Of a stretch of 64,000 nucleotides of DNA, positions 1-18,957 are shown piece by piece. The stretch covers positions 34,534,001-34,598,000 of the forward strand of contig NC_083292.1 in assembly GCF_963506605.1 (NCBI RefSeq), in the 5' to 3' direction. How positions within the stretch are numbered: the first letter of the stretch is position 1; the number at the start of each line of letters is the position of its first letter. The notes beneath the pieces are model-generated. The model was not told the DNA's origin. It did no database searches and saw nothing but the letters and a program-made list of their open reading frames with translations. This DNA is from Zootoca vivipara (taxonomy: Eukaryota). A program made the position numbers and the translations under genes.

Positions 1-1792
1 GCTTGTAATTATATTGCAGTAGCACCATACTTCGCAGCGAGTCCAAGGATAAGTTGCCTCTCTCTTTGCTCAGAGAGAAAATGCACCCTGCGTTTGCATA
101 ATGTGAGGCAAGGGCAAAGAAACCCTGTGCCATCTTCAAAAGTTCCGAGTGGCACATAATGTTTTTGGAAGTCTCAAAGTACTTGGTCCACTTCTGATGT
201 GCCTGGAGCTTAATGAACTCGTCGTCGCCTTTAAATTGATCCACAAACTTCTCGAGGTTGCAGAATTGATCGAAGCACTTCCCCTCATCTATGGACACCT
301 CCCTGTCCAGGAGAAACTTTATGGAAGGTCCTACCTTGTCCCACTCTAGTGACTCACTAAGGGACATCCACATGAAGCATGAAAACTCCTTCATGGGCTC
401 CATCCGTTTCTCCAGATACTCTATGCAGCTGTCATAGAAGCGGTTGACCTCTGCGCAGAATTTGTCGCACTCCGCGCCGAGACCCTCCTCGCGCTTTTCT
501 TTCAGAAGGCTCTTGACCTTGAGGGACATGAAGCTGTGGCTCCTGCGTTCAGCGAGCATGTTCTGGACACAAAGCAGAACTTGGAGAATCTCCACCACCG
601 AATTGTTTTCCCTTTCGAGTTCTAAAACATACGAGTGAAACATACTCATGAGAGACTGCAAGTGCAATAAATAAGCCTCGCTGAGCTCATGCTCAAAAAA
701 CTCTTGCAACACTGTCGGCGGTTTATTCTGGGAGAGGAAAAATGCCTTGACGGCTGGAAACGCGTGAATGAGTCTGGTGATGCCCGGAAAGGACGACAAC
801 CACCGTGTCTTGCTGCGAGACAGCAACTTGTTGTATTCAGTGTCCACAAATTCACAGTACTCCTTTAACTGCTCCGTTCGGACTCTATAGATATGAAAGT
901 ACTGGTATATCTTGAAAATGACGCTCTCAACGTCGACGTCCAACGTGTCCGCTGCTTGATGGACACAGTTATTCAAAATGTGCGCTGGACATCCCACACC
1001 GATTGAAGTTTTGTTATCCAGCTCACTCTTCAACTTTGCAAACACATTTCTTCCTTCTGAATCCTGCTGTATCCCTCCAAACACTGTGTTGCAGTTGTCA
1101 CCTGTGAATGCTATGCATTTCTTTAACAGTCCTTTACTGTCAAGGGTTTCCTTCACGTACGAAAAGATTGTATCTGCAGTCTCATTGGGTTGGCTTTGCA
1201 TTTCAATTATTTTGGACTGCAAACCACCACTTTTCCAGTCAAAATACTGAATAACTATTGCAACCACCTTGACCGGACCATGGTTACTCGCATCTGTAGA
1301 AACGCCGCAATAACCTATTTCATTTTCTTCAAGGCTTTTCAGAACATTTTCCAAACAATCGGGCGCCAATACAGAATTTACAATTGCCTCTGTCTTGGTT
1401 TTTGCACTTGAAAACTTCCTTGCAATATCGGAATCCGGGAACATCGTCTTCAGGAGGCCTGATGTGCACGTCATCACGTTATAACTGTGGTGGTGTTTGA
1501 CGGTGTGAAAAGCGAAAGTTCCTTCTGCTGCGGTTACTTCATCTTCCCATTTGCTACAGGATTTTACGAAAACGTTTGCTAATTTTGCTGAAGAAGCTTC
1601 TCCTCGACTTGCTATTTTGTGTTTCTCAGAGTCCATGTGCGATTGCAGGTCACGCCCTCCTTTATGTGCCACAGAGACAAACGTACCCGGTCTACATACC
1701 AGGCATTCACCTTCAAAGTCATCTCTACCTCTTCTGAAACAGGTATACTTCCTCTGTAGCTGGACAGAAAATCTACATTTTCTTTTCGGCAT
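1..1792 (-). CDS. hAT-transposase-derived protein (>=597 aa, 3' end beyond window start); candidate domesticated gene
   Basis: Manual translation of the - strand from ATG at 1792 (gccaaaATG; in-frame TAA 13 codons upstream) is open to position 1. It begins MPKRKCRF... and contains a C30-x2-C33...H52-x5-H58 zinc finger, STD167ASN, FTGD232NCN, GVGC268PAH271ILNN and SKTRW331LS, with C-terminal dimerisation-like LLKMAQGFFALASHYANAGCIFSL. Candidate splice acceptor ttttctgtcttgtattcttttgtag at 1916-1940. Confidence 0.85.
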   Translation of the reverse strand, partial: MPKRKCRFSVQLQRKYTCFRRGRDDFEGECLVCRPGTFVSVAHKGGRDLQSHMDSEKHKIASRGEASSAKLANVFVKSCSKWEDEVTAAEGTFAFHTVKHHHSYNVMTCTSGLLKTMFPDSDIARKFSSAKTKTEAIVNSVLAPDCLENVLKSLEENEIGYCGVSTDASNHGPVKVVAIVIQYFDWKSGGLQSKIIEMQSQPNETADTIFSYVKETLDSKGLLKKCIAFTGDNCNTVFGGIQQDSEGRNVFAKLKSELDNKTSIGVGCPAHILNNCVHQAADTLDVDVESVIFKIYQYFHIYRVRTEQLKEYCEFVDTEYNKLLSRSKTRWLSSFPGITRLIHAFPAVKAFFLSQNKPPTVLQEFFEHELSEAYLLHLQSLMSMFHSYVLELERENNSVVEILQVLLCVQNMLAERRSHSFMSLKVKSLLKEKREEGLGAECDKFCAEVNRFYDSCIEYLEKRMEPMKEFSCFMWMSLSESLEWDKVGPSIKFLLDREVSIDEGKCFDQFCNLEKFVDQFKGDDEFIKLQAHQKWTKYFETSKNIMCHSELLKMAQGFFALASHYANAGCIFSLSKERGNLSLDSLRSMVLLQYNYK

Positions 1793-2783
1793 TTTGGCAC
1801 GTAGAAGCACAGCACGTAGAAAAAACCGTTAAGAAAGGTGGCAAAAGACTAAACGGAACTTGGAACTGGAAGTTAACACCATACAGCACTGCCTCCTATA
1901 GCAGAGCAAAGAGCCCTACAAAAGAATACAAGACAGAAAATTACTTACTGAACAATTCATGTATTCTTCAGGAAAAAGACTAGAACCCTCTATTGGGTAC
2001 CTTCATAAAGAATTCAGATGTCTATAAAAACCTATAAAACAGCAATAGAAAGGCACATACAATCAAACAAAAGAGAGATCCAGAGGGTTCACACATGTAA
2101 AACAGGGTCCAATCTTATGGGTCTGGGAAAGCCTGGCCAAAAAGAAAAGCTTTCACAAGACATGCGAACCAAATGATGGCTGTGAACCAAATGAATGGTG
2201 ACAACAGCATAAAAAACACGCCCTGTCACAACAATGATAAAGGGCTCCATTCAGCTAAAGGGCATGCACCACAGCTTTCCTGTGGAACACCCTCCCACCA
2301 GATGTCAAAGAGGAAAACAACTACCAGACTTTTAGAAGACATCTGAAGGCAGCCCTGTTCAGGGAGGCTTTTAATGTTTAATAGATTACTGTACACAACT
2401 TCAGGTGCAATGTTATGGACCTAACTTGCCTTGCTACACACTTATCTTGGTCAACAATGAGGCAACGCATCATCAGAATATAAGGCCGTCTGCCACTGGG
2501 TGGCAAAACATAGGCATGCATCCCCCAACTCCTCCCCAACTACTGATGAACCCCCTTAAAAGTTATAGCTGTCCTCTGTGCAATGCCACACATAGGGGCA
2601 AGCCCCATTCTACTGCCAACCCCTCTCTTGCTATCAATGCATGCCCACCCACCCCCCAAGAGCAAGCTTTTGAACACCACCCGTCTTGGCCATGCTGTTC
2701 TTAGCACCCTAGCCATCACCCTCCCAGTTCCCAAGTGGAGAGGTGCTGGCGGAGGGGAGGGCAAAGAAACCCACCTCCCTCTC

Positions 2784-3030
2784 TACAGTTGCCACCTGTC
2801 CTGTGTAATACAGGATTGTCCCGTATTTCAATGTAAAACGCTGTGTCCTGTATGGATAATTTTGTCCTGCATTTCAGCTTTCCTCTCTCTGCCAAGTTAG
2901 GGATCCCCTCCAAATGCACGTGTCAGCACCATCACGTCAGCACCAGGTTTTTTTTGGGGGGGGGAAGAGATCTTCCCCCCCCCCACTGCACCTCCCTGTC
3001 CTGTATTTTTCCAGAACAGTGGCAACCCTA
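2784..3030. mobile_element. short hAT (Blackjack-like) non-autonomous element
   Basis: Imperfect TIRs tacagttgccac / gtggcaacccta with subterminal tgtcctgta repeats; only an approximate TSD. Confidence 0.5.
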
Positions 3031-3199
3031 CCCTCCTCCTTCTCGGGACCCCACCACCGCCCTCCACCTCTTCATCGCCCCCGCCACGCATGATTTTAGC
3101 CAGGATTTGGGGGGGGGAGAGAACCTCAGTCTGCTATGTATTTTTATTGATCTTTATTGATTTGGGGGGAGGGGCAGCTGCCTCCTCCCAGTCCCGGCT

Positions 3200-3500
3200 C
3201 CCCAGCAAACCCGGGGCTCCAGTCCGCCCTTCTTCACAACCAGCCCCCCCCCCAGGCCCTACGCAGACCCACCGACCTGCCCACCTCCGCCACCCGCCAT
3301 TAGAGGCGCCATTGTCACCCCTCTGCTGCCGCCTCCGCCGCCACGTGCAACATCCCCGCGCGCTCGCAGCGCCGCCTCTCGGATACGTCATTTCAGCGCG
3401 ACTCCAGACGCGCAGCGTCCGCCTCGACGTCGGAAGAGGGGAAGGGAACGCGGCGAGAAATAAATCGCGGACGGAGTGAGAAAAGTCCCCGGCGGAAGAA
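3200..3500 (-). promoter_or_regulatory. CpG island; probable promoter/non-coding first exon of the transposase-derived gene
   Basis: GC/CpG-rich, with CRE-like TACGTCA and CGACGTCG, E-box CACGTG and ETS-like CGGAAG. Several candidate minus-strand donors (GTGGGT, GTCGGT) near 3265-3285. Confidence 0.5.
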
Positions 3501-4379
3501 TGGCCATTGCTGCAACAGCAGCACAGCTTGCAGAACGTGATGGGCCCAATGGAAACAACGCCTAACCATGGTTTGTTTCCCTTACCTCTATATGCAATCC
3601 CCTTTAGCGGTGTCTAAAAGGGTGGATTTACAACCCCCAGCTTCTAGGCTTCACAAGTACTGGATGTGAAATAAAATATTTCTGGGCCCAAAATAGGGGT
3701 CTCAGCCTCGAATGGAGGACTGGACCCACGCAAAGAGCACGTTTGAGAGGCTCTAAGCCGGTCGGGAAAGACAGAGACCACAGCAGGACTTACAGAAAGC
3801 AAGGCGGCTACGGAAGCCTGATCTCTATTCTTTGAAGTATAAAGACTGTTGGTAACAGGGTTCCCCCTCACGCAACAAAATGACGAAGAGAGAACCCCGA
3901 ACCTGAAGCGTCTGTAACCTGAAGCGCCTGCGGTACCCCGAGGTACCACTGTATTGTCCAATCTTTACTCGCTTTCTGGTTTGAGTTTCCTCTTATTCTC
4001 CCATTAATTTTCGCAAGTTCTAAATATTCTATCCTCTTCCCTTGCCAGTCAATTTTTGTGGAGATTGAGTCACCTTTCCAGTTTTTTTGCTATTAAAATT
4101 CTAGCTGCTGTGGTTGCGTAAACTGCTAAAGTTTTTAAGCTCGCTAGGCGCAAGGCTAGAGGACCTGATTTTTTGAAACCACCGCAGCAAAAGAAAGTGT
4201 CTCGTCCTCGTCACACTAATCATTTCACTTCCCAACCGTTTCTTGCAAACTCCCAATAGCCACTCTTTGCCCCGCACATGGCGGCTCCTCCCAGCTGCGT
4301 CAGAGGACCAGAAATCACCTTGGATGCATCATAGAGACTGTGGGCTGAAACCCCCTTTGAGGCAGAACTGAACTCCTCC

Positions 4380-4700
4380 ACTCCACCGAGTCGGCCCGCG
4401 CGTGCGCAGTGCGTGCGCAAGGGAAAAAAAACCCCAACAACCTTCTTCCCGGAATGCCCCACGTGAGCGTTATGAGTGAGGTGGAAATAGATGCGAGGAA
4501 GCCCCGCCTCATAACAATGATGGGGCCAAGATGGCGCCTGGCGATAGCTGCGCTTGTGGGCTTCGTCGTTCCTGTCCCTGGGTAAGTTATGAGGGGCTCA
4601 CGGTGGGTGGAGGACCTCGGGCATTTTGGGAAAGGGGAAAGTGGGGGCTTCCAAGTGAATGATGGTCGCCTGAGCGCCGCAAGGGTGAGTCCACACTGTG
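4380..4700 (+). promoter_or_regulatory. JTB CpG-island promoter
   Basis: NRF1-like GCGCGTGCGCA/GTGCGTGCGCA (~4397-4419), ETS-like CCGGAA, YY1 motif CAAGATGGCG (4527-4536). Confidence 0.6.
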
Positions 4701-7700
4701 CCTTTAAAGCGCTTTTATACCCCTTGGAACAGTCATGGCTTCCTCGCAAAGAAGTCTGGGAGATGTGGTTTGTTTGTTAAGGGTGCTGAGAGTCGTTAGG
4801 TTACTCGCCTATCCCCCACCCCCACCCCAAGCTGCAATTCTCGGAGTGGTTTAACAAGCACTCTCTCTTCTTTGGGAGCTCTGGAAAATGCATAGCTGTC
4901 AAGTTTTCCCTTTTCTCGTGTGGAAGCCTATTCAGCATAAGGGAATTTCTCTTTAAAAAAGGGAGAACCTGACAGCTATGAAAATGTAATTCTGGGAGAG
5001 GAATTTGATAAACAAATAATAATAGGTTAATCTCGGGAAATTAGAATATCGTCAAAAAGTGCATTGATTTACAAATGCTTTCTTTTGGAGATTCCACAGT
5101 AATAAAGCAAATAGTTACAATAATACAAAAACAAAAATAAACATCGCTATTGCATTTCATTAATTACATTCCATTTATAATTGACCCGCCTAATGACAAA
5201 TAATTACAATTACAACAAATAAAGGCTTTACATATCTTGCTTTGCATGTCATGCATCTATCTCATATATTGGTTTCACCTTTTAAGTTGCATTACTGAAA
5301 TAAATGCACTTTTCGGCGATATTCTAATTTTCCGAGTTTCACCTGTAGAGTTGGAAGGGTCCCTGAGGGTCATCTAGTCCAATCCCTGGCAATGCAGGAA
5401 TCTTTTGCCCAATGTGGGACTCGAACCCATGACCTTAAGATTAAGAGTCCTATGCTCTGCTGCAAGTCATGTCTAAGAAACAAAACATGAGAGGAAAATG
5501 ACTCCCATCTGCTCCTGACAAGAGAGATTTTATCTTAGGTACATCACTGAAGGCAGCAACCAATGCTGAAGATTTGTCTAAATATATTTGCCTGGGACCA
5601 TGTTCACATCCTACATTGAAAACATTGGAATATCACTTTAAAAAGTCATGCCTCCCCCCCTCACTTCCCCCCTCTAAGCTATAAAGCAGGCATCCCCAAA
5701 CTGTTGGCCCTCCAGATTTTTGGCCTACAACTCCCATGATCCCTCACTAACAGGACCAGTGGTCGGGGAAGATGGGAATTGTAGTCCAAAACATCTGGAG
5801 GGCCGAAGTTTGGGGATGCCTGCTATAAAGTCTCAAGCCTTGTGCTTCTGTGGAAGCTGTTTGATTCTTCTTCACCAAGATTTGTTCTTCTTTGTGTCTT
5901 GCAACGTGATCTTTAATTAATTTTTCCACCAATTTAACTGGAGCCTAAAAGGTAAAGGTAAAGGGACCCCTGACCATTAGGTCCAGTCGTGACCGACTCT
6001 GGGGTTGCGCGCTCATCTCGCATTATTGGCCGAAGGAGCCGGTGTATAGCTTCCAGGTCATGTGGCCAGCATGACAAAGCTGCTTCTGGCAAACCAGAGC
6101 AGCACATGGAAACGCCGTTTACCTTCCCGCTGTAGCGGTTCCTATTTATCTACTTGCATTTTGACGTGCTTTCGAACTGCTAGGTTGGCAGGAGCTGGGA
6201 CCGAGCAACGGGAGCTCACCCCGTCACAGGAATTCGAACCGCCGACCTTCTGATCAGCAAGCCCTAGGCTCAGTGATTTAACCACAGCGCCACCTGGGTC
6301 CCAACTGGAGCCTACACTTAAGTTAATCAGATGATGGGGACAAACTTGTGGGAGAGCTGTGGCTTTTATGCCCTACCTGTGGACTTCCTGGGAGGAACAG
6401 ATTGGTCACTGTGAGAAATGGCACTAGATGGGCTTTTGGTTTTATTCACCAGGACTACCCACAATTGTCTTTAAGGTGACAAATTAGCCTGTTGCCCCCA
6501 TTGTCTCTCATTTTAATCATTTTAATCTCTCTGCAATGTTCTCTCTCTCTTTTTCTGTCCTGTTTCCAGGTTGGCTGAAGTGGCTTTGGAAAGTGATGGG
6601 AAAAACCCAGGTGAGAGAGGACAATTGTATCTGTTTTGGCTATGTGAGTTTGTGTTGTATAGTTTGATTTCTAGCTTTTTTTTGTCTGGAAGAACCGAGA
6701 TGGAGTGGAGGGCAGAGAGGTACTGTATGAGAAAATGGTGCTGCAAAAGATTTGAATGCATGTCATTTCCCTGGCTGCGTGGCCCTTAATTTTCTCAAAA
6801 CACCCTTGAGTATGATGCTCAACAGAATGTAAGGAGAGAGCCCTATGGCTGGATCAGGCCAGTGATCCATCTAGTCCATCATCCTGTTCTCACAGTAGCT
6901 AACCAGATGTCTGGGAAGCCTGACCAGTAGTTCTCTGCCTACATTAAAAATCCTTAGCATCTAGTACTCCAAAGTATTGCTGCCTCTGATAGTGAATACA
7001 GAACGTTGCCATTGTGGCTGGTAGCCGTTGATAGCCTTATCCGTCGTGAATGTGTGTACCTCTTTTGAGACCATCTAAATTGATGGCTATCTGCTTCGTG
7101 CGGGAACGAGTTCCGCAGGTTGCCAGTAACTCTGCACTGTGGATCGGCCCTGAATCTTCCAATGTTCAGCTTTATTGGATGTCTACGAGTTCTAATGTTA
7201 TGATAGGGGGAGAAAACTAAGAGCAGTTCTGCCGGGTCAGGCCAATGGCATATCTAGCCAGTAAAACCACTGATAACATTTTCCTTCATGGATTTGTCTA
7301 ATCCCCTTTTAAAGCCATCCAGGTTAGTTCCCGTTGCTGCCTCTTGCGGGGGGTGAGTTCCGTAGCTTAACTCTGCGCTGCATAAAGAGCTGTGTGTGTT
7401 TGTTTTGTTGAAGCTGACTCCTGATCTCCTCTTTGGCTTCCTGCAGCCAGTTTGCCTGGGGTCACGCCGTGTTGGCAAAGCGAGGATTTCGTGGTGACCC
7501 AGCAGTGCGCTCCCTGCCAGAGTTTTCAGGCGGTAAGTGAACCTCCCGACAGGAACAAAACGTTGGGCAAGGGTAAAAATGAAACGCCTTAACCGCTGCT
7601 AAAATATGTGCAAGAGAGACTGATGTTCCCACTTTCAAACATATCTTATCCACCGTGGTGTTTAATGCCACAAAATAAGATAACGGACTCAGAAGCTTTA

Positions 7701-9757
7701 GTACAATAATAACACAGAAGGTAGAATTATGTCCTATGCTGAGTCAAGGCCAGTACTGAGCTCAGTATGGTTTACACTGACAGGCCACGGTTCTCCAGGG
7801 TATCAGATGGAGAATCTTTGCTAGCCCTACAGGCAGATCTCAGGGGCTGAGCCTGGGACCTTACGCATACAAACCAGATGCTCTTATCATTGATCTACAG
7901 TGGTACCTCTACTTACGAATAACTCTATTTACGAATGTTTCTACTTACGAATGGAGCTCCGTCCGCCATCTTCGATGCGGTTTAGATACGACTTTTTCTA
8001 CTTACGAATTTTTAGATAGGGTTGCTTCGACTTACGATTTTTTTCTCCCAATGCATTCCTATGGGATTCGCCTTACAATTTTTTCCGACTTACGAATGTG
8101 CGTTCGGAACGCATTAAATTCGTAAGTAGAGGTACCACTGTATATTCCTTCCTTTAAAAATATAGATGCTAGTCCTCAAGGTTCTGAATAAAAGGCTAAC
8201 TTAAATAGGAAGCTACCTTAACACTGATTCAGACCAGTGTCCATCAAGCTCATTATTGTCTTCAAACTGACTGGCAGGAGCAATCCAGGGATTCAGGGCT
8301 CTCTTTCAGTCCCAGAGATGCCATTGGGGGTTGAACCCGGGTCCTTTGTGTGATGCAAAGCCAATGTTCTACTATAGCAGAATGGGGAAGGGGTGGGTTC
8401 CCCATGTCCGTTTCAGAAGTGAGCATCTCCTGGGTTGATGATTGCAACAGCTTTTCCGAAGGACTGAATCGCAAGCGCTTGGCAGCAGTGTTATTTAATG
8501 AAACGTGTGCTCTCGGTTGTAGAAAACGATGCCAGAATGCAGCGTGACGGGCTTCGTTGAGCAGATCAACTGCAGCGCTTCCAAGAAGGGCGAATACAAG
8601 AGGTGAGCTCACTGTGAGGATAAGAGCAGTGGGCCTTGCCACCCCAGGGTGCTGCTTCTGACAGTGGCCAGCGGCAGATCCTGCTGGAGCAAGGGGTGCT
8701 GACTAATGTCACAGATCAGTTACACAGGATGGCGGTGAAGGCGAGCCTCTGGCAGTGAGAGACGGCCCTCCAAACCTCTCTTATGCTGCCCTTAAGGCTC
8801 TCTGCAGGCCACACACCTCACCAGCCCTGATTCATAGCCTCCTTGGCTGTGCCTGGCTGGGATGTGTCCCTGAAGTCTCTGGTCATGACTCTTGCCTGAA
8901 ATCCCACTGCCCTGCAACCCCATACCGTAACTGATCTGTCATGGATGCTTTAGCTGAGATTCCCGCATTGCAGGGGGTTGGACTCAATGGCCCTCGGGGA
9001 CCCCTTCCAAATCTACGATTCTATAATTTGCTGCTAACCATTTCTTACTGAAGCAGGAAAGGGCCCTGTAAGCCTCTGGGTTAAAGAGGGGGAATCATGG
9101 CAGTCTGAAAGCTGAGAAGCAAGAATGTTTTTCTTCTTCTCTTCCTTTTTGAATACAGTACCCCTGCCCTGTAACAGCCAACCATCTCTCCCGTTTGTCA
9201 GGAATACTCCCTTCCATTCCTACCCTCCCGCTGGTTTTCTGTTCCTCCTGACAGACAGCATTCCATGGCCACTGAACAGGCTTGTTTTGCAGGGGGAACT
9301 AATCCCTGAAGATCCCACCCAATATCTGTTCTTCTGCAAACGTTCAGAGTTTCTATGAGCTTTCTTTCATCTCGTTTCTCAGTCCCCCTGCCCCTCTTCA
9401 GTTTGCCACTAGAGGGAGCAACCAACCCGTTTTAGCTCGCCTCCCTGTTGCGTTCTGTGCTTTGGCAGGCAGGTGAAGGGCCTAACCAAGACCCCTTTCC
9501 AGCCATCCCTGTTTCCCTTACACACCGCTCCCTTCTGCATGCTCCCTCCTTGGTGTGTCCATCAGCAGAGGGTTGCGCTCACCTTGCCTTCTCCTTGCAG
9601 CTGCCGTTCCATGGAGATGGAAGCTCGCATCTTCTGGAAGTTCGAGGGCGCCATGCTTGGCGTGGCGGCCGTCTTCGCCCTGCTGGTGGTGTGTCGGCAG
9701 CGCATGCTCGACCGCAGAGCCTTGGAGAAAGTGCGCAAGCAGATAGAATCCATCTAG
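4517..9757 (+). CDS. JTB: Protein JTB (jumping translocation breakpoint); exons 4517-4581, 6570-6610, 7447-7532, 8523-8602, 9601-9757
   Basis: All introns are GT-AG with consistent phases (429 nt, 142 aa). Signal-peptide-like N-terminus, PCWQSEDFVVTQQCAPC, KTMPECSVTGFVEQINC, a TM segment and the C-terminus RQRMLDRRALEKVRKQIESI typical of JTB. In-frame upstream ATGs at 4454 and 4472 are alternative starts. Confidence 0.93.
4891..4980. mobile_element. 90-bp hAT MITE (copy 1 of 3)
   Basis: TIR catagctgtca.../...tgacagctatg; near-identical to 25392-25481 and 42265-42354. Confidence 0.8.
5030..5346. mobile_element. Tc1/mariner-type MITE
   Basis: Long TIR (ctcggaaaattagaatatcgtc...gatattctaattttccgagtttcacctg|ta); same family as 34592-34946 and ~49704-50000. 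Confidence 0.75.
5687..5822. mobile_element. URR1-like hAT MITE
   Basis: Palindromic cagggcatccccaaact...agtttggggatgcctg with a perfect 8-bp TSD ctataaag. Confidence 0.85.
5948..6302 (-). mobile_element. Sauria SINE
   Basis: tRNA-like head, acgactggacctaatggtcaggggtccc and an (acctt)n-like tail; 12-bp TSD aactggagccta (5936-5947, 6303-6314). Confidence 0.88.
7898..8140. mobile_element. Tc1/mariner (Tigger/pogo-like) MITE
   Basis: TIR cagtggtacctctacttacgaat / attcgtaagtagaggtaccactg, TA TSD, internal acttacga repeats. Confidence 0.85.
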
Positions 9758-12023
9758 TCGCGCCGGGGTCTCTCGCCGCACTTTTCGGAACAGAACCTAG
9801 CGACAGCGGTTGCGGGGCAGCGGCGGGAGTGAATCTTCCATTGGACTGTTTGGAGGAGGGAACGAGCACCCTGTGCTCATTGGAAAGCATTTCCCCCCCC
9901 CTTCACTTCTGGCCACTAGGGAATGCTGCTTCCCACACCTGGGACCTAAAGGCACTTGGACTGAAACTGTTGCATTGAAATGCTGGCAACTTGCATCGTT
10001 TTTTGAACATCCTGGGCACTTGTACGAAGAACCGTCTTGCACCCCACATTGTCTGTGGTGCATCCTGACTTGGTTTCCTGCATGGTCTCGATCTGTTGCA
10101 AACTCTTCTGCCTCTCTAGCCTGTGTTGGATTCAAAGGAGCAAGCCCAGCATCTCCCTGGTCATACCACTGTTTTATTAAAGACCAGAAAACCCCGGTGA
10201 GCATCTCTAAATCTTGTAAGGAAAGTGACTGATCTCTGCCCTTATTCATGCAACGCCCTTTCTTTTTGGGGGTGCGGAAAATGTAGCTCTATTTTGGCTT
10301 TTTTAAAAAGCCGCCCTGCGTATAGTCTGGGTGTGTGTGTGCGCGCTGTCAGAACTTTACTGTGGCTTATTTTAAACAGCCGTCCCTACTGGATTCCTCT
10401 GTAAGAAACCTCAATGTGATTAAAAGCACGATGAAGCTTTCCAAACGCACATGCTCTGCTTTGTATCCGGTGCTGGCAAATAGATTTTTCTTTCTTTCGT
10501 GCTGGCAGATTTGTGTGGCCCAGCAGAAGCCAAATGGGACAGAGCTGGATCTGTTAAGCTTGGTGGAACTGAAGCCAGAGCAGGCAGAATGATGCATTTG
10601 GGGAAAAAAACTGGGGAGCAGAGATGGTAAGGGGAGGAATGGGGCAGCTTGGTGAAACCTCTATGCCTTGAATGGCTACAACTTTTGCATTTTGTCAGCT
10701 TGGCCTGCATACACACCACAAATTTAATGCACAGGGCTCCCCCAAAGCATCCTGGGAGATGTAGTTTACCCACCACAGTTACCCTTAAAAAACTACAGTT
10801 CCCAGGATTCTTTTTTGGGGGTGGGGGTGGGTCATTGAAAGTGTTGTGTGCACAGAGCCCTGGGCTTGAGAGGGCAGGGAATTTAGGCATTCCATTGTCT
10901 TGGAGTGGGGCAGTTTGTGAGTGGGCAAGACTGACAAAAAGCCCAGTGCCTCAAGCCCACCTCTTTCTGATTTTTGTGTGTGGAACACCCATGAAATCAA
11001 AAGCAATGTGTGAAAATTTGCAGGCTGCACACTCGTTTTTGAGTGCAGAAGCTCTCGGGCTCAACGTCTGGCATCGCTAGGTAGGGCTGAGAGAGACCTG
11101 GAGGGTCTTTACTGAGCTAGATGGAGCAATCTTCTGACTCGAAATAAGGTGGCTTTCTATGTTCTTCTGTGTTAAGAGATGTGCTGGGATTTCCCGGCAC
11201 AAGAGCCCCAAATATTTGAAACCCAAAGAAGGGTGGGAGTAGCTAGAAGCAAACTCCCAAGGGTTGTTTGCATTGTTAGGTTACTGATCCCCACTGGATG
11301 AAACCAAAGGCCTCTGTGTCACGCATAGCATCCTATTGCTTCCACTGACCAGCCAGAAGGTACCAAATACCCAATACACAGGGCAGGAATTCAGTAGCCC
11401 TCTTCTGGGAAAGCGCATGGGCACTGAGGGGATGTGAGCCTACATGATTAGGGTGGCTGGGCGGTTTGCAAGCAGCTGCAAGCCTGGCCAGGGCATCTCA
11501 ACACCAACCTGACAGTCTAGCATTTCATAAAATCATGAAATGATTGTGAAGCACCTCTTGTTTTTTGCTGCTGCTAGTGATGTGCCGTGCATTCCTTGTG
11601 CTAATGTTCATCGTGTTAATTGTAGCTGGAGAAATGTACCTCTGCCGTCTAGGATCTCAGCGCCAGGCAGGCTCCCTTGCTATTGGGATACATCTGAATC
11701 TTTTGGGTTTTAAATATATGCTTTCCCTTTTCCAGGCCTTCCAGCCATTCAGGCTGTGTCACCCACCTGCTTTAACCCGAATTATTGCCCCCCTCCCTTT
11801 AGCACCCACCCATAGATTTCCAGGAAAAAAACCCCACTTTGCACATGCTCAGAAGCTCCCTTTTATTTCTTCCCCAACCCGGCTCCAGGGTTCCGTTGAA
11901 GCTTGCCCACTTCCCCGGATCATAACCTGCTCCCTCATGGAGCTGGTGCGTTGCAATGAGGCAGGAAGCAGGAAGTTGCTGACACAGGTGGGGAGGGGAA
12001 ATGTGGCGCGCAATCCCATAATT

Positions 12024-15000
12024 TCACAAGCACTTGAGGAGGAAAGCATTGCAGGCTGATCCGCGGGGGCAGTTGCAGAGCTTGCCAATCCGGGCGCCTT
12101 TCCTGACGGCACACAGGTCACCGAAGGAACACTGTGAGAAAGGGGGGGGGGGAGGATGGTTGAAAAAGTCAATCCCTCTTCCCAGGGGACTCTGGGAATT
12201 GTAGTTCTGGGGTGGAAGAGCAGGGCACCTCTGGGAGGTCCACAGACTCTCCATGACCTGCAGTTCCTCTCTTGACCCCCTCCTCCTTTCCCCCTTGGCT
12301 CTGGCTGCATGGTCTTCCTGATCCTGACCCCCTTCTTCCTCCCCTGATGGCAGCTGCCTCACGGGGGGTGGGGCACAGAACACCACTTCTCCCAAATCAT
12401 CCTCCCTCTCTGTCTCCTCTGGCTGCACATTCCTGCCCTCCTCAGGCTCCTGCCCATCCTGGACATCAGGAGTCTTGTGGGGGGAGGGGAGAGCCATAAC
12501 TCTTTAAACCAGGCTTCCTCAACCTCGGCCCTCCAGATGTTTTTGGCCTGCAACTCCCATGATCCCTAGCTAGCAGGACCAGTGGTCAGGGATGTTGGGA
12601 ATTGTAGCCTCAAAACATCTGGAGGGCCGAGGTTGAGGAAGCCCGCTTTACACTTTGCCCACTGCTTTAATTCGTGCTGCCTTTGTCAAGGAAGGAGGAG
12701 AAGAGAAGAGCCAGGATTACTTGCCCCAAGGTGGCTCTAGTTCCGTCAGCCATTTGCTCTGGCGCCACCTGCTGTTGGGCTCCCAGCTACGTGCCCTATC
12801 AAGCCCAATGGGCCCACCGGCCTGCCCTGGGTCTTTGTACAAGGGATGCACCAATGTAAGCGTGAGGGGGGGGGGACTAGTTTTGCTATTAATCCCTCTT
12901 CTCAGGGAACTCTGGGAATTGTATTTCTGTGAGGGGGATAAGGTTTTTTCCCCTCACAACCCTCAGGGCTCTTAACAAACCACAGTTCCCAGAATCCTTT
13001 GGGGGAAGCCATGCCTGTGTGAAGTGGGATGATACTGGTCCAACATTCACACAGCACCAACCCCCCCCCCCCGGCCCTCGTGGCACTGTCCCCTGCATCC
13101 ATCGGCAACTATCTAGGCAGCGCCCGGTACCTTGGGAACTTGGTTGAATTTCTTCTCCCAAGTGGAGACCTTCTTATGTTGTAGCTTCTCCAGCACCTCC
13201 TGAAGTTCATCCAGCTAGAGAGGAAAGGAAGAGGTTGAGGAATTATTAAGGTGTGAGAAGAGCACCTGGCGTGTCTGGCGTGATTCCTGCTTCCATAAGA
13301 GGCCAAATTATGACCGACTGTATTCTTGGCTCTCACTATTGCAGGGGTGGGGTGGGCGACCTGTGGCCCTCCAGGTGTTATTGGACTACATCCCCCATCA
13401 TCCCTGAGCATTGGCCATGCTGGCTAGGGCTGATGGGAAGTGGAGTCCAGCGACATCTAGAGTTGCCAGAGGCTCCCCAACTTCTGCTGTTAGTAATGAG
13501 CACACATTATGGTCAAGAACTTGTCGGTTCCAATTGCTGTATGACCAACAATGTCTGGAGGACACAAGTTTTCCTAAGGACTAGAAACTTGATGGTTTTG
13601 AAAAGAAAGAAATGCACTTAACTTTGTTCGGTGGAGGGTTGGATCTTTCATAGATCCATTTCTATGCATTTTTTAAAAAAGAATTTCGTCCTCAAGTAGA
13701 TGCCTTCTGCACATTGTTGAGACTCTAACTCCCATCAGCCCCAACCAGCACAGCCAGGGATCAGGGATGATGGGAGTTGTAGTCCAGCAACATTTGGAGG
13801 GTCAAAGGCTCCCTAAGCCTGGCCTAATGGACTGCCTTCATCCCACCTAGTAAGAACTTGCATCTTCCCCCAACATTTTTTCTCCTAATCATAAGATATT
13901 TAGGTGATTAATGAGCTCGGTTTCCATAAGAGTGGGGGGGGGGGGAGAGAGAAGCATTCCAAAGGCAAGGAAACACATACACTTTGTTCTGGAGAGACAC
14001 AGGGCATGTTTTTTCACAGAGTGTAGAATTAGCAGTGCAGTTAGGTAATGTTTTCCCCTCACAGTAATGTTTGGACTTAATGGTCTTGTGGGGGGGGGGC
14101 TCTTTAGATAGTAATGTGCATTACATTACCTCCTCCAAAATGTGCTCAGCCAGGCCTGGTGCATCAGGGGACCCCTGGCTGCCCACTCCACTGAGTGGGG
14201 CCCTGGACTTCTGCCCTGTATGGCGCCAGTGTGGGGGAAGTACCCTCCACCTATGGGGGAAATTGTCTTTTGCAATGGATGTCTGCCCTGTCAGCATCGC
14301 TGAGCATAATAACTGTATTCCACTCACTGTCACAACATCTGCTGTGATGGCCACTCACGTAAATGGAAAAATAAAATGAATAATCCATGAATTTGCCTGT
14401 CGACCGATGCTGCCCATGAACGCTAGCTCTATGGAACCTGCTTCTGAATACCACTTCCAGGGAGGCAAGAGCTGGAGAAGGGCTGTTTCTTTATTGCCCT
14501 GCTTGCAGACTTCTTGAAGGCTTCTGATTGGCTGCTGTGGTCACTGAAATGCTGGGCTAGCTAGAATGTTGGTCTGATGAGGAAGGGCTTCTTGGAGGCT
14601 TCTGATTGGCTGCTGTGGCAGCAGAATGCTGGGCTAGTCAGAATGTTGGTCTGATGTGGAAGGGCTTCTCGAAGGCTTCTGATTGGCTGCTGTGGTCACT
14701 GGAAAGCTGGACTAGCTAGAATGTTGGTCTGGTGCGGAAGGGTGTTTTGGAGGCTTCTAATTGGTTGCTGTGGTCAGTGGAATGCTGCACTAAATGGAAT
14801 GTTGGGTCTGATGCGGAAGGGCTTCTCGGAGGCTTCTGATTGGCTGCTGTGGCAGCGGAATGCTGGGCTAGATGGAATGTTGCTCTAATGTGGAAGGGCT
14901 TCTCGGAGGCTTCTGATTGGCTGCTGTGGTCAGTGGAATGCTGGTCTAGCTGGAATATTGGTCTGATAGGGAAGGGCTTCTCGAAGGCTTCTGATTGGCT

Positions 15001-17089
15001 GCTGTGACAGCAGAATGCTGGGCTAGATGGAATGTTGGTCTGATAGGCAAGGGCTTCATCGAAGGGCTTCTGATTGGCTGCTGTGGTCACTGGAATACAG
15101 TACTGGACTAGCTAGAATGTTGGTCTGATGTGGAAGGGTGTTTTGGAGGCTTCTGATTGGTTAATGTGGTCAGTGGAATGCTGGCCTAGCTAGAATTTGA
15201 TCTAGCTTCTTGGAGGCTTCTGATTGGCTGCTGCAGGCAGCAGAATGCTGGAATGGATGGAATGTTGGTCAGATGGGGAATGTCCAGAGGTGGATTACCC
15301 CAGAGATAAAGTCCTATGAGAAAAGGTCTGTGGCGTTTGATGCACATAGCCTAGAGAAGGGACAACTGGAGAAAAGGGCGTGGCTCATTGGTAGAGCATC
15401 CATATTGTATGCAGAAGCTCCCAGGATGGACCAATGATCTTCTTTGGTATAAAGGAGCATCCTCTGTTCTCATTACAGTCCAGCACCATCTTCAGATATT
15501 TGTTTTTTAGTTCAGAGCAAACTTGTTCTGTTTNNNNNNNNNNNNNNNNNNNNNNNNNNNNNNNNNNNNNNNNNNNNNNNNNNNNNNNNNNNNNNNNNNN
15601 NNNNNNNNNNNNNNNNNNNNNNNNNNNNNNNNNNNNNNNNNNNNNNNNNNNNNNNNNNNNNNNNNNNNNNNNNNNNNNNNNNNNNNNNNNNNNNNNNNNN
15701 NNNNNNNNNNNNNNNNNNNNNNNNNNNNNNNNNCCAAAGGCCTGGTTAAAGAGTAACATTTTCACCTGGCACTTAATGAAGGCGCCAGCTGAGCCTCCCT
15801 GGGGAGAGCATTCCACGTGCGGGGAGCCACAGTAGAAAAGGTCCATTTTTGGGTTGCAGAGGTAGACTGCCTCCGAGATTGGAGGCTCCATTCTTAACAA
15901 TCATAGCTATCGGCCTAAGAAGTGCTTTGCTGGAGCGGACCAAAGGTACACAGACTCCATCCTGGAGGGCTTGAAGCTGAGTGGTAGAAGTTCCCACTTC
16001 AATCCCTGGCATTTTCTGGTAAGGTTGGGATTGTTGCCTGCCTAAAACCCTGGAGAGCTGCTGCCGGTCAGTGTAGACAATACTGAGCTAGATGCACCGA
16101 TGCCTGGACTCAGTATAATACCGGTACATGTTCTTTTTACATTCAGCCCTTTATCCAGAACAATGGAGACGGAAATCTCACTTGATTCTTTAGGAGAAGG
16201 ACTGTGGAGCAGTTGCTTTGCATGCAGAAGGTTCCAGGTTCAAATCTCCGGCACCTCTAGGGAGAGCTTGGGATGCCCCATGCCTCGAACCTTGGAGAGC
16301 TGCTGCCAGTCAGTGTAGGCAATACTAACCTAGTTGGACCACTGGTCTGACTCTGTATAAGGCAGTTTCCTACATTCTATGAGAAAGGTCCTTCTTCTTA
16401 TTGTTATTATTATTATTTGCATTTTTATCCCACCTTCTCCCTAATATAGGGATGTGCAACCCATCCCACTGCTTCTGCTCTATATCACAAAATCCATTGA
16501 GCGGACATCTGTTTTGCCCTGGCGGTGGATATCCTTGGGTGCCACCCTTTGGGCGTTGGTGTCATGGGATAGTCACCTCCAAATATCTCGAAGGGCTGCT
16601 GCATGGGTGGAAGACAGAGCAAGCTTGTTTCCTGGAACATTCAGGGGGGGACTTTCTGACGGGAAGAGCCGTTCGACAGGGGAACGAGCTAACTGAGAAC
16701 TCTACTTGGAGGTTTTCAAATTCTTTTAAGCTGCGCTTCCCGCATGGCAGAGGGGGTTCGACTTAGATGACCCTCCCCACGCTACAATTATGCCGGGGAG
16801 GGTTGCCCGTGGGGCTCTCAAATCCCTCTGCGCATCCTGCCCACCGGGTGCAATTGATCCGCTGCCCCCCTGCACCGTGGCGGGCAGCCCACGGACGGGG
16901 ACCACCCCGCGTGGCGCTTTTGCGGCGCAGACCAACGCCTCTTTTACTCACCAGCTCCTTCTCGTGCGCCTGGTAGGCGTGCTTGAAAGGGAACTCCTGG
17001 GGTGCCCGGCTAGCTGTGGCGAGGCTTCTGTGTGCCGCCAAAATCAGGCAGAGCAGGAAGGCCACCGAGCCCAATTGGGAGCGGTCCAT
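12024..17089 (-). CDS. Cocaine- and amphetamine-regulated transcript (CART) prepropeptide-like paralogue; exons 17089-16952, 13214-13131, 12131-12024
   Basis: Three phase-0 GT-AG exons give 109 aa: signal peptide [20 protein letters not shown]..., EKEL|[28 protein letters not shown]|[35 protein letters not shown], with all six CART cysteines. AATAAA on the - strand at 11862-11867. Confidence 0.93.
12510..12645. mobile_element. URR1-like hAT MITE
   Basis: Palindromic; TSD ctttaaac/ctttacac. Confidence 0.8.
14515..15275. repeat. ~77-bp minisatellite, ~10 copies, in CART-like intron 1
   Basis: Unit is approximately aggcttctgattggctgctgtggcagcagaatgctgggctagatggaatgttggtctgatgtggaagggcttctcga. 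Confidence 0.9.
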
Positions 17090-17135
17090 TGTGGACAGGG
17101 ATCCAAAAGAGCAAGCGGAAAGCTCAGGGCTGGAG

Positions 17136-17203
<68 letters not shown>

Positions 17204-17205
17204 GA
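17136..17205. repeat. compound (AG)n(ACAG)n microsatellite just upstream of the CART-like ATG
   Basis: Seen directly in the sequence. Confidence 0.95.
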
Positions 17206-17227
17206 GAAGAGTGAGCTCAAAGCCACA

Positions 17228-17248
17228 GGAGCTGTCCTCAGTGCTGAA
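17228..17248 (-). promoter_or_regulatory. RE1/NRSE (REST-binding) element
   Basis: The - strand reads TTCAGCACTGAGGACAGCTCC versus consensus TTCAGCACCACGGACAGCGCC; 140 bp upstream of the CART-like ATG. Confidence 0.7.
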
Positions 17249-18094
17249 GCCTGATGCCTTCCTTCCTCTGGCTTAGCAGGAGAAAGCGCCAGCCTGTCAG
17301 TTTCCCTCTGGCTGGCGAGGCAGGCAGAGATGGGGGTGGGTGTCTTGGGAAGAGAGGGGAGTGAGGTGCCCCCCCCCCACCAGCCTGTGTCCCCACAGGA
17401 TGGGGGGAGGCATGTGGAAGTGGTGGGTGGGTGTGGGGAAGAGAGCTAGGCACACAGCTGGGTGCAAAATTGCTGTTGGCAGCCCCCATGGGTGGGTGGG
17501 TGCGTGGGGTGCTTAAGCGGCAGGGAGGGGGCCTCTGGCTGACTATTTATCAGAGGTTTTACTCTGCAAATTGCAATTTTGGCAAGCGGCGGGAGGCATT
17601 AGATCGAGCAGAGAGCCTCATCCATCATCTTGGCCGGGGGCCCAGCGCTTTGCTGGGAGCAGAATGGGCTGGGAATTAGCTCGTTCCCCCGCCCAATAAC
17701 CGTTGATTCTGATGTGCCTCCCTGAGCATCTCTGAGCCTAATGATCTGCTATTATTCTGTCCTGTTATTATTAGAATTAATCATTGCGTGTAAGTATGGT
17801 GAGAGCGTCACTGTGTCCAAAAGCGCTTCGAAATCATGGGCTTGTTTATCTGTCTTCATTCTCCCTCCCTCCCTATGCCGAACATCTAGAACACTTGCAT
17901 GGCATACAAAAGGGCCTGGGTTCAATCCTTAGCTAGAGCTAGGAGAGGCCCCTTGTCTGAAGCCTTGGAGAGCTGCTGCCAGTCAGCGTAGGTAATTCTG
18001 AGCTAGATGGATCAATGGTCTACTTCAGTATGAAGCAACTACCTATGTCCCTCTGTAAATCAGCCCTTTATTCAGAACCATGAGGACTAGAACT

Positions 18095-18540
18095 TAGAGT
18101 CATAGAATTGTAGAGTTGGAAGGGAGCCAGAGGGTCATTTAGTCCTACCCTCAGCTAAAGCATCCATGACAGATGGCCATCCAACCATCTGTCATCCTTT
18201 GAGAGCCCACCACCTCCCGAGGGAGTCCATTCCACTGTCAAAGTTGTCAGAAAGTTTTTTCTCCTGTTTAGTTGGAATCTCCTTTGTTGTACCTGGAGGC
18301 CATTGGTTCAAGTCCTACCCTCCAGAGCAGGAGAAAACAAGCTTGCTCCATCTTCCATGGGACAGCCCTTGAGATATTTGAAGACGGCTCTCATATCTCC
18401 TCTCAGTCTCCTCTTTTCCAGGCTAAACATGCCCAGCTCCTTCAACAGTTCCTCATAAGGCTTGGTTTCCAGATTTTTGGCCAATCTTGGTTACCCTCCT
18501 CTGCACACCTTCCAGCTTATCTATATCCTTCTTTAATTCT
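18095..18540 (-). mobile_element. CR1 LINE 3' fragment
   Basis: Begins catagaattgtagagttggaaggg, the reverse of the CR1 3' end; aggctaaacatgcccagctccttcaac follows. Confidence 0.65.
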
Positions 18541-18881
18541 TAAGGAAAGGGCCGTGGGTCAGTGCCAGAGCCACTGTTTTTTATATGTAGAAGGTTTCAG
18601 GTTCAATCCCAAATGGCATTTCCAGGTAGGGGTGAGAATGTATGCTGCCCCAAGCAGCTCACTGGTTGGTTTCTGTCTCTGAAGCAGCAATTAAAAGGCA
18701 AGAAAAGAGAAGATCTGTTTGTCATCCATTCACCTACCTGTCCTGCTCCCCCCCCCTCCTGCTCTGCCTTAAGTTTCCCTCTGGCTAAACTCCCTTGCCT
18801 TGTACGTTAATCTCTATCCATTTATCTTTTTGACAATTTGATCTTTGCTTTCTTCAGAAAACATTTAAAGATGTTCCAAGG

Positions 18882-18886
<5 letters not shown>

Positions 18887-18954
<68 letters not shown>
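18887..18954. repeat. (TC)n microsatellite
   Basis: Seen directly in the sequence. Confidence 0.95.

Positions 18955-18957
<3 letters not shown>

Follow-up and report, generated by a model that had tools for sequence, protein, structure and literature searches.

A hAT transposase-derived gene beside JTB in the lacertid lizard Zootoca vivipara, probably domesticated and without a complete catalytic triad

INTRODUCTION

Domesticated transposases are a recurring origin of new DNA-binding regulators and, to our knowledge, the cases that have been studied are nearly all mammalian or plant. A long transposase-like open reading frame (ORF) lying beside JTB, at the left end of a 64-kb stretch of the Zootoca vivipara genome (the window, i.e. 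the whole stretch of DNA that was analysed), raises the question of whether such an ORF belongs to a host gene or to a transposon. A sequence-only reading had proposed a domesticated hAT gene, a proposal now supported by copy number, shared lesions, selection and expression. We consider it probable (roughly 80%) that a FAM200/ZBED5/GTF2IRD2-like hAT transposase gave rise to a domesticated host gene, with this ORF as its main coding exon, and that lacertids have at least three such paralogues, this gene included. No published work on these lacertid genes, or on their LOC identifiers, was found in a literature search.

THE OPEN READING FRAME AND ITS PRODUCT

On the minus strand, translation of positions 1-1792 yields a frame of 597 codons that opens at an ATG (1792-1790), begins MPKRKC and runs without a stop to the left end of the window, while stops are abundant in the other two frames. 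Its product matches residues 1-597 of P0123 at 100% identity. P0123 is a 656-residue protein that public annotation had already predicted, and together with the Hermes-like fold described below this identity marks 1-1792 as exon 2 coding sequence, covering codons 1-597 out of 656. The remaining 59 codons (598-656) and the stop codon sit to the left of the window, which holds a single copy of the ORF. Translation thus bears out the earlier claim of at least 597 codons free of stops and frameshifts. The ORF had also been said to be missing from the program-made ORF list, which is correct and is explained by the fact that it leaves the window. The residues that had been singled out are all present, namely MPKRKC, C30/C33/H52/H58, D167, D232, C268-P-A-H271, R330-W331 and ANAG569C-IFS.

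The domain profiles named in the sequence-only reading (zf-BED and Dimer_Tnp_hAT, PF05699) fared less well, with no Pfam match to either in the window protein. Searches with the window ORF, the full-length protein and its paralogues returned only sub-threshold noise (ATG17_like, DUF4144). PF05699 was matched in two relatives, P0074 and P0063, unlike in the window protein, whose C-terminal hAT motif is altered (ANAGCIFSL, together with a five-residue deletion). The AlphaFold model of the protein (mean pLDDT 82, pTM 0.74) was compared with the PDB using Foldseek, and Hermes transposase accounts for all ten of its best matches (E 7e-9 to 9e-8, probability 1.00, TM 0.55-0.63 on the target). The protein is thus predicted to have a hAT transposase fold, in which, as in Hermes, a large all-alpha insertion domain breaks up the RNase-H-like core.

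Close to the N-terminus, family conservation and the model outline a BED-like zinc finger (C30, C33 ... H52, H58; 1619-1705, minus strand). These four residues are almost invariant in a 75-member family, with C30 found in 71, C33 in 73 and both H52 and H58 in all 75 members. In the model, the finger consists of strands 19-21, 27-30 and 38-40 and helices 46-53 and 56-62 (pLDDT 77-91), a beta-beta-alpha-like arrangement.

The ancestral DDE triad is incomplete, since D167 and D232 are present and the third residue is G569. The codon of the first catalytic Asp, D167 (1292-1294, minus strand), is kept, as it is in 73/75 family members, and Gly is found at this position solely in lacertid paralogue group C (see below). 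The second Asp, D232 (1097-1099, minus strand), is shared by 74/75 members, and the CxxH and RW motifs are retained as well. The loss of the DDE glutamate, already read from the letters, is upheld by alignment of the family profile to Hermes, in which the C-terminal hAT region falls on Hermes residues ~549-607 and the column of G569 (86-88, minus strand) falls on catalytic E572 in the SAASERTFSL motif. This column contains Glu in 69/75 members and Gly solely in the orthologue group of the window gene (group A), and C570 replaces the family Arg directly after it. Slightly further on, L574 and S575 (68-73, minus strand) flank a five-residue in-frame deletion (MQSQW in the family) that, according to the alignments, is common to all of group A.

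TRANSCRIPT AND PROMOTER

Splicing of the gene was anticipated from sequence, with an acceptor placed 123 nt ahead of the ATG, and RNA data agree. The acceptor AG lies at 1917-1916, which puts the first base of exon 2 at 1915 and leaves exactly 123 nt before the ATG. Contigs of three species (X13, X19 and X20, presumed to be RNA) follow the genome as far as 1914-1917, beyond which 83, 135 and 11 letters, respectively, are no longer collinear with it. The mRNA is spliced into this acceptor. Sequence and the contig breaks define a 5' untranslated part of exon 2 of 123 nt (1793-1915, minus strand), containing an upstream ATG whose frame closes at a TAA ahead of the main ATG. Stranded X21 RNA reads have their first mates on the plus strand over the ORF and on the minus strand over JTB exon 1, and therefore represent sense transcripts of the hAT-derived gene and of JTB. 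Their depth is 2-17 on the ORF, 0 in 2001-2200 and ~0 in 2401-2800, i.e. within the intron (1916-3276, minus strand), which is delimited by the acceptor AG and this near-zero depth. A dispersed repeat occupies 2278-2393 inside the intron.

The other end of the intron is placed less directly, and the donor is a prediction. Two candidates are CAG|GTCGGT (3277|3276) and GAG|GTGGGC (3285|3284), the first of which would end a putative non-coding exon 1 with approximate limits at 3277-3360 (minus strand). This exon is placed in the CpG island because depth arithmetic fits: the stretch of 83 letters beyond the acceptor in X13 contig 5, multiplied by the contig depth of 6.06, gives the same total as X13 shows in bin 3201-3400 (2.51 x 200). 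The X19 and X20 contigs remain collinear as far as 1917, which would be expected of an exon 1 with AG at its end. The island itself (3201-3600; GC 0.56-0.71, CpG o/e 1.02-1.09) is the probable promoter of the hAT-derived gene. First exon and promoter would thus be located at ~3277-3600, in a divergent orientation relative to JTB. The sequence-only reading had likewise seen a separate upstream island divergent from JTB; the island is there, JTB is on the plus strand, and sense reads cover the ORF with splicing at the predicted acceptor.

JTB starts ~1.1 kb away from exon 1. It is identified by two stop-free plus-strand segments within 3501-19730 that match Pfam JTB (best E 1.9e-12). The coding part of its exon 1 (4517-4581, plus strand) opens at ATG 4517 with a signal-peptide-like sequence and ends at a donor 4581|4582 (GT at 4582), and X21 depth in 4401-4600 is 12, with the first mate on the minus strand. 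Weak plus-strand transcription also begins at the right edge of the island, at ~3580, where X13 contigs cover 3580-4431 and X21 first mates are on the minus strand.

ORTHOLOGUES AND PARALOGUES

Group A has a single gene in each of five species, Lacerta agilis, Podarcis muralis, P. raffonei, P. lilfordi and Z. vivipara, and the products of these genes are 94-95% identical. The gene is annotated as LOC117038958 in L. agilis, LOC114586650 in P. muralis and LOC128403691 in P. raffonei. In all five species the gene is on a chromosome of 40-43 Mb. The clade is supported at 100%, the Podarcis members cluster together with 98%, and the tree follows the species tree, as would be the case for orthologues. 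Orthology is suggested by the tree, by the one-per-species pattern and by the similar chromosome sizes. The chromosome sizes, and the acceptor break common to contigs of three species, may be indirect signs of a shared locus. The Glu-to-Gly change at 569 and the five-residue deletion are found in all five orthologues, and are therefore older than the split of these species. The 656-codon ORF is intact in each of them and every observed indel is in-frame. In the window and among annotated proteins clustered at 90%, there is one copy and one group A protein per species, respectively, rather than many near-identical ones; copy number had been put forward as a test of domestication.

The gene had been described as lineage-specific. 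This is true of the orthologue group, which is confined to lacertids, but lacertids have at least three paralogue groups, A among them. Group B, which has kept D, D and E, is conserved in Zootoca and Podarcis alike, with Zootoca branching outside Podarcis, while group C, present in Podarcis species only, has lost the first Asp. A further lacertid group, D, was found in Logan only. Outside lizards, a snake set (e.g. Candoia LOC134506400/416/547, Liasis PHA67_000747-749 and Vipera M6D78_016129/130) is at least 90% conserved from python and boa to elapids and forms one well-supported clade.

It is tempting to suppose a single ancient domestication in squamates as the source of all these genes, i.e. 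lacertid groups A-D as well as the snake genes, which are tandem and C-terminally truncated. This would have been followed by subfunctionalisation in lacertids, where B would have kept the DDE triad. A and C would have lost different catalytic residues independently and would now act as DNA-binding partners or regulators, themselves non-catalytic, of either B or residual hAT elements. An AU test of the monophyly of lacertid and snake genes (p=0.095) neither rejected a common origin nor supported one. We regard this scenario as doubtful. If true, it would define an undescribed gene family.

SELECTION ON THE PROTEIN

Comparison of sequences shows that both the reading frame and the amino-acid sequence are kept by purifying selection. 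The dN/dS values, which had been suggested as a check, are based on 40 of 257 difference rows rather than on full codon alignments. In this subset there are 7 nonsynonymous and 18 synonymous differences to organism B, and 5 and 11, respectively, to organism C, resulting in an omega of ~0.10-0.17 and a probability under neutrality of 4e-8 to 6e-4 (<1e-5 for organism B, <6e-4 for organism C). Within the species, X21 reads show 0 nonsynonymous and 8 synonymous differences. Persistence of the frame points in the same direction: 3.5-4.2% of random substitutions create stops, and the probability of five intact 656-codon ORFs under neutrality would be ~1e-3 to 1e-8 (indels ignored).

Constraint is unevenly distributed along the protein. 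The BED and N-terminal helical region varies at 6/139 positions in group A, versus 60/517 elsewhere (Fisher p=0.010), and residues 1-62, the BED/N-terminal part, are variable at only three positions (3/62). The overall rate is not low, with a protein divergence between genera of ~5-6% in group A, and changes do not avoid family-conserved columns (15/169 versus 41/451, Fisher p=1.0), which they do in group B (p=9e-4). Constraint on the old catalytic core thus looks relaxed in group A, since changes there do not spare family-conserved columns, and relaxation of the core is preferred over neutrality because of the synonymous excess.

ALTERNATIVE EXPLANATIONS AND PROPOSED ROLE

Could the ORF nevertheless be an intact copy of a still or recently mobile autonomous hAT transposon, the proteins of other lizards being independent insertions of the same family? 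The wider family certainly looks transposon-like, since matches of 40-65% identity are scattered patchily over fishes, a caecilian, turtles, insects and a scorpion, and since it also occurs as multi-copy, fragmentary clusters on single ENA contigs. However, the single copy in the window, the one group A protein per species, the identical Glu loss and deletion in all five, the fully supported clade in which Podarcis members cluster as orthologues would, the preference of substitutions for synonymous sites and an mRNA that is spliced and probably starts in a CpG-island exon outside the ORF block make such an explanation extremely unlikely. An old immobile relic drifting towards a pseudogene, transcribed merely from the neighbourhood of the JTB CpG island and annotated because its ORF is still unbroken, would account for the fairly high divergence between genera, the unspared family-conserved columns, the decay of catalytic and adjoining residues and the failure of Pfam to recognise a domain. 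It is difficult to reconcile with the synonymous excess (omega ~0.1-0.17), with five intact ORFs in which indels are in-frame only (P<=1e-3 under neutrality), with the significantly better conservation of the N-terminal DNA-binding part or with the similar maintenance of two sister paralogue groups, and we judge it very improbable.

An alternative of a different kind accepts domestication and supposes that the protein is still a nuclease or recombinase, either alone, by means of a substitute acidic residue, or as a non-catalytic partner of group B. The retention of D167, D232, CxxH and RW throughout group A would be in accord with this idea, as would the conservation of the whole triad in group B from Zootoca to Podarcis and the fact that hAT transposases work as multimers (Hermes structures being among the fold matches). 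Yet Gly occupies the Glu column in every group A member, the adjacent helix carries the five-residue deletion, and several changes on the stem of the group fall at conserved columns near active-site elements (177, 178, 334 and 569), so that continued activity seems improbable.

Transposase domestication is a known process, and the lacertid gene is a fresh example of it, not a dying transposon copy. The domesticated protein would no longer be able to cut or join DNA and would act through its best-kept parts, the N-terminal BED-like zinc finger and the helical DNA-binding region that follows. Because these parts are kept best, the most likely role would be that of a sequence-specific DNA-binding factor, either a transcriptional or chromatin regulator or a binder/repressor of related hAT ends. 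By analogy with other hAT proteins, it would probably be multimeric.

On this reading, the locus would be a young, clade-restricted case of domestication in which three paralogues have been conserved in parallel, two of them having independently lost different catalytic residues, with a snake set from the same transposon family conserved separately. Lacertid and snake genes would therefore offer a natural series showing which functions (DNA binding, multimerisation, catalysis) stay or go after domestication. For genome annotation, the 'uncharacterized LOC' models found here would represent real genes under selection and not transposon noise.

COMPARISON WITH KNOWN SYSTEMS

The closest parallels are vertebrate genes of the FAM200, ZBED5, GTF2IRD2 and ZMYM1-6 type, which are also host genes derived from a full-length transposase and encoded mostly by one exon. 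Their products combine a zinc finger at the N-terminus with an RNase-H-like core and, at the C-terminus, a hAT region, the last of which is altered in the window protein. Relatives of the window protein are annotated as FAM200B-like, SCAND3-like or DUF4371, and the nearest Atlas clusters (score 0.94-0.97) carry PF05699, PF14291, PF27073 (FAM200-ZBED5_RNase-like) and PF27046 (FAM200-GTF2IRD2-like). PF14291 (DUF4371) had no Pfam match in the window protein. Several relatives bear precomputed PF27046, PF27041 and PF27073, and as the Pfam scan showed no PF27xxx even on these relatives, the copy of Pfam that was used may lack these families. Despite the similar layout, the window gene is an orthologue of none of the named genes. 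Its orthologues are limited to lacertids, the best 120 matches include no protein from a mammal or bird and, unlike this comparison set, its product has no fused host domain.

Hermes from Musca domestica (PDB 2BW3, 4D1Q, 6DWW, 8SJD) shares the predicted fold, and its C-terminal motif and CxxH align with those of the window protein. The two are only 12-14% identical, however, and the lacertid protein has Gly at the equivalent of E572 and lacks five residues after the motif. Unlike Hermes, the window gene shows no sign of mobility.

Exon capture provides another point of comparison. Cosby et al. (bioRxiv 10.1101/2020.05.07.082677) describe host-transposase genes that arise when promoters or exons are captured through a splice acceptor preceding the transposase ORF. 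They report purifying selection on every one of the 81 transposase domains tested and the use of acceptors that the transposon already contained, and no lacertid gene was found in the parts of the work that were searched. As in the genes described there, the ORF of the window gene is linked to a host-side exon by an acceptor that closely precedes the ATG. The captured exon of the window gene differs in being, as predicted, a non-coding 5' UTR from the CpG island, and no host-domain fusion protein is made because the captured exon is non-coding.

The snake set comes from the same transposase family. Its proteins, of 570-580 residues, are 50-56% identical to the window protein and end right after the catalytic-Glu motif; as in lacertids the ORFs are intact, and several isoforms are annotated in snakes.

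Identity of the frame and loss of the catalytic glutamate

The hAT-transposase-derived frame occupies 1-1792 of the window on the minus strand, where translation from an ATG at 1792-1790 gives 597 stop-free codons and continues past the left window end; both alternative frames of this interval contain many stops. The unbroken ORF of at least 597 codons claimed in the sequence-only reading is thus borne out, as is its absence from the window's ORF listing, the sole reason for which is that the frame exits the window. The RAB13 side and the final 59 codons of the gene lie outside the window, within whose 64 kb the ORF is single-copy. A cluster look-up retrieved a 656-aa protein from public annotation (P0123) whose residues 1-597 are the window ORF; RefSeq-type annotation already contains a model of this gene, under the label 'uncharacterized LOC'.

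A Pfam scan, suggested earlier as a way to find Dimer_Tnp_hAT and zf-BED, returned no significant domain in either the ORF or the full-length protein. A search of 5.8 billion proteins found 187 relatives, and a profile of 16 of them matches the Hermes hAT transposase. The NANVERIFSL motif of the relatives aligns onto SAASERTFSL in Hermes, where its Glu, counting from the chain numbering, is E572, established for Hermes as the third catalytic residue. An AlphaFold model of the window protein (75 relatives as input; mean pLDDT 82, pTM 0.74) has Hermes transposase as all ten of its best PDB matches (E 7e-9 to 9e-8). All residues named beforehand are present (the MPKRKC start, C30/C33/H52/H58, D167, D232, C268-P-A-H271, R330-W331 and ANAG569CIFS), and the proposed loss of the DDE glutamate is real: the corresponding column is Glu in 69/75 relatives and Gly only in the window protein and its closest kin, while the following residue, Arg in 63/75 relatives, is Cys in the window protein.

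Neighbours in the protein atlas carry Dimer_Tnp_hAT, DUF4371, FAM200-ZBED5_RNase-like and FAM200-GTF2IRD2-like domains, which is a lead, not proof, that the family belongs to the FAM200/ZBED5/GTF2IRD2-like hAT branch. Outside squamates, the family comes closest to fish proteins and to ENA clusters, multi-copy and fragmentary, that look transposon-like, and no bird or mammal proteins were among the best 120 matches of the protein search.

Transcription, splicing and the JTB side

JTB is indeed arranged head-to-head with the ORF: two stop-free plus-strand segments between 3501 and 19730 match Pfam JTB (best E 1.9e-12), and the ATG at 4517 (+), which opens a signal-peptide-like sequence, has a GTAAGT donor downstream at 4582. 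In X21, a run of stranded raw reads of which ~6% was read, first mates lie on the minus strand over JTB exon 1 (depth 12) and on the plus strand across the ORF (depth 2-17, uneven). Because JTB is encoded on the plus strand, first mates in this library are antisense to their transcripts, and those over the ORF come from sense transcription of it.

The strong splice acceptor predicted upstream of the ATG was found as an AG at 1917-1916 (-), so that exon 2 begins at 1915, exactly 123 nt ahead of the ATG. Within the intron, X21 leaves 2001-2200 uncovered (depth 0) and 2401-2800 nearly so (about 0). Contigs of organism A (run X13) are collinear with the window to 1914 and then continue with 83 letters foreign to the adjacent DNA, those of organism B (X19) to 1917 with 135 such letters, and those of organism C (X20) to 1917 with 11, a pattern that splicing into the predicted acceptor would be expected to leave. 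X13, X19 and X20 were assigned to RNA by guess, and the break of their contigs at the acceptor argues that this is what they are. The separate CpG island that had been described upstream lies at 3201-3600 (GC 0.56-0.71, CpG o/e 1.02-1.09), and exon 1 probably lies inside it, since the product of these 83 letters and the contig's depth, 6.06, matches the X13 total for bin 3201-3400 (2.51 x 200). There are two plausible candidate donors on the minus strand, CAG/GTCGGT at 3277/3276 and GAG/GTGGGC at 3285/3284. Of the proposed junction from ~3270 to 1915, the acceptor side is therefore seen as contig breaks at 1914-1917 in three organisms, and the probable position of exon 1 comes from depth.

The 5' UTR in exon 2 (1793-1915, -) contains an upstream ATG in the frame of the main ORF; its frame closes at a TAA lying 12 codons short of the main ATG, making a short uORF. 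Isoform X1 of Podarcis paralogue C (see below) reads through the homologous stretch as an N-terminal extension (…GVLLRVKM vs AVLLRAKM in the window).

On the JTB side, there is low-level plus-strand transcription at 3580-4522, ahead of the JTB start codon, seen as X13 contigs (3580-3982, 4011-4234 and 4214-4431) and as X21 first mates on the minus strand (depth 0.7-2.9, climbing to 12 at 4401-4600). It may reflect, for example, a second JTB start lying further upstream, or be a promoter-upstream transcript, and with plus-strand transcription from 3580 the CpG island may fire both ways. Within 1-3600, only the intronic interval 2278-2393 recurs elsewhere in the window (four further copies); its summed contig depth of 4,000-27,000 in all four runs makes it look like a SINE- or MITE-like element abundant in transcriptomes. 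The repeat-rich 4800-6000 interval has RNA depth of up to ~1,100 raw reads and ~1e5 contig depth, many opposite-strand and backward joints, and loose ends at 5718, 5822 and 5948-5953, suggesting abundant sharp-edged interspersed repeats, possibly with nested insertions.

Lacertid paralogues and a snake gene set

At 90% identity, P0123 clusters with exactly one protein per species from Lacerta agilis (LOC117038958), Podarcis muralis (LOC114586650), P. raffonei (LOC128403691) and P. lilfordi, not with many near-identical copies. These orthologues (group A) are all encoded on chromosomes of 40-43 Mb, and in 5/5 the motif Glu is replaced by Gly and 5 residues just past the motif are deleted in frame, two lesions that are therefore older than the split of these genera. 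Two paralogue sets show similar conservation: group B (Zootoca and three Podarcis, on a chromosome of 85-97 Mb) retains the full D, D, E triad, and group C, from three Podarcis and on the same chromosome as A, retains the Glu and has Gly for the first Asp. A fourth set within the lacertid clade, group D (P0004 and P0134-P0146, in Logan/ENA only), also retains the triad. One exact 648-aa group D sequence occurs on 136 transcript-sized contigs of ~2.5-3.7 kb, and group D could be the orthologue in a relative that has been sequenced heavily, or an element that is still active.

In the tree, lacertid sequences form one clade (support 100) that resolves A, B and C as monophyletic groups. Branching within A and B fits the expected species relationships (Podarcis together, Zootoca outside them), so the duplications are older than the divergence of Lacerta, Podarcis and Zootoca. 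Groups A and C have stems (~0.095) twice the length of that of B (0.043).

Snakes (python, boa, vipers, colubrids and elapids) have two or three genes of this family each, with consecutive locus tags (P0012, P0021 and P0168-P0183) and hence likely adjacent. Their proteins (570-580 aa) end directly after the catalytic-Glu motif and share at least 90% identity over the whole cluster, from python to elapids; the genes have many annotated isoforms and look like a separate, strongly conserved domesticated set. Snakes and lacertids may or may not share one domestication (AU test of lacertid plus snake monophyly, p=0.095). The three-paralogue pattern and this parallel snake set add to the interest of the locus.

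Selection on the group A gene

Relative to the ORF, contigs of organism B differ at 60/1478 letters (4.1%) and those of organism C at 99/1694 (5.8%). Codon classification, covering ORF-internal sites among 40 of 257 differences, gave 7 nonsynonymous and 18 synonymous changes for organism B, 5 and 11 for organism C, and 0 and 8 for the same-species raw RNA reads (X21), where random changes would be 73-80% nonsynonymous. On this subset omega is ~0.10-0.17, and neutrality is rejected (P 4e-8 to 6e-4). The group A ORFs are intact in 5/5 species and all three indels observed are in-frame. If 3.5-4.2% of substitutions introduce a stop and the neutral tree length is taken as 0.10-0.22 (our own estimate), neutrality predicts 7-18 stops in the five ORFs (P(0) 1e-3 down to 1e-8). 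The window ORF is under purifying selection.

As a caveat, amino-acid changes in group A do not avoid the columns conserved in the transposon family (15/169 vs 41/451, p=1.0), those in group B do (p=9e-4), and in group A the BED finger and next helical region vary at 6/139 positions vs 60/517 elsewhere (p=0.010). Because the N-terminal part varies less and changes do not spare family-conserved columns, we read constraint in group A as having moved towards the putative DNA-binding N-terminus, with relaxation of the old catalytic core.

X13 and X21, both labelled as coming from the same organism, depart from the window at about 1% of ORF positions. Several window alleles (R326, A344, E498, and those at synonymous sites 119 and 1580) occur in the assembly and in none of the four runs, which suggests deeply split lineages within the species or an assembled individual from a divergent population.

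Proposed function

The gene encodes a protein with a hAT fold that keeps the finger and lacks the Glu; it is under purifying selection, and its sense transcript is spliced. We infer that its product is catalytically inert and would act as a DNA-binding factor, probably multimeric. Its targets may be host genes under its regulation or the ends of related hAT elements, among which MITE ends were suggested earlier. A possible but unsupported role for the group A protein is that of a non-catalytic partner to paralogue B, which retains DDE. A literature search found no paper on these genes. Capture of transposases via acceptors upstream of their ORF has been described as a general route (Cosby et al., bioRxiv 10.1101/2020.05.07.082677), and we read this gene as a further case of a known process, transposase domestication.
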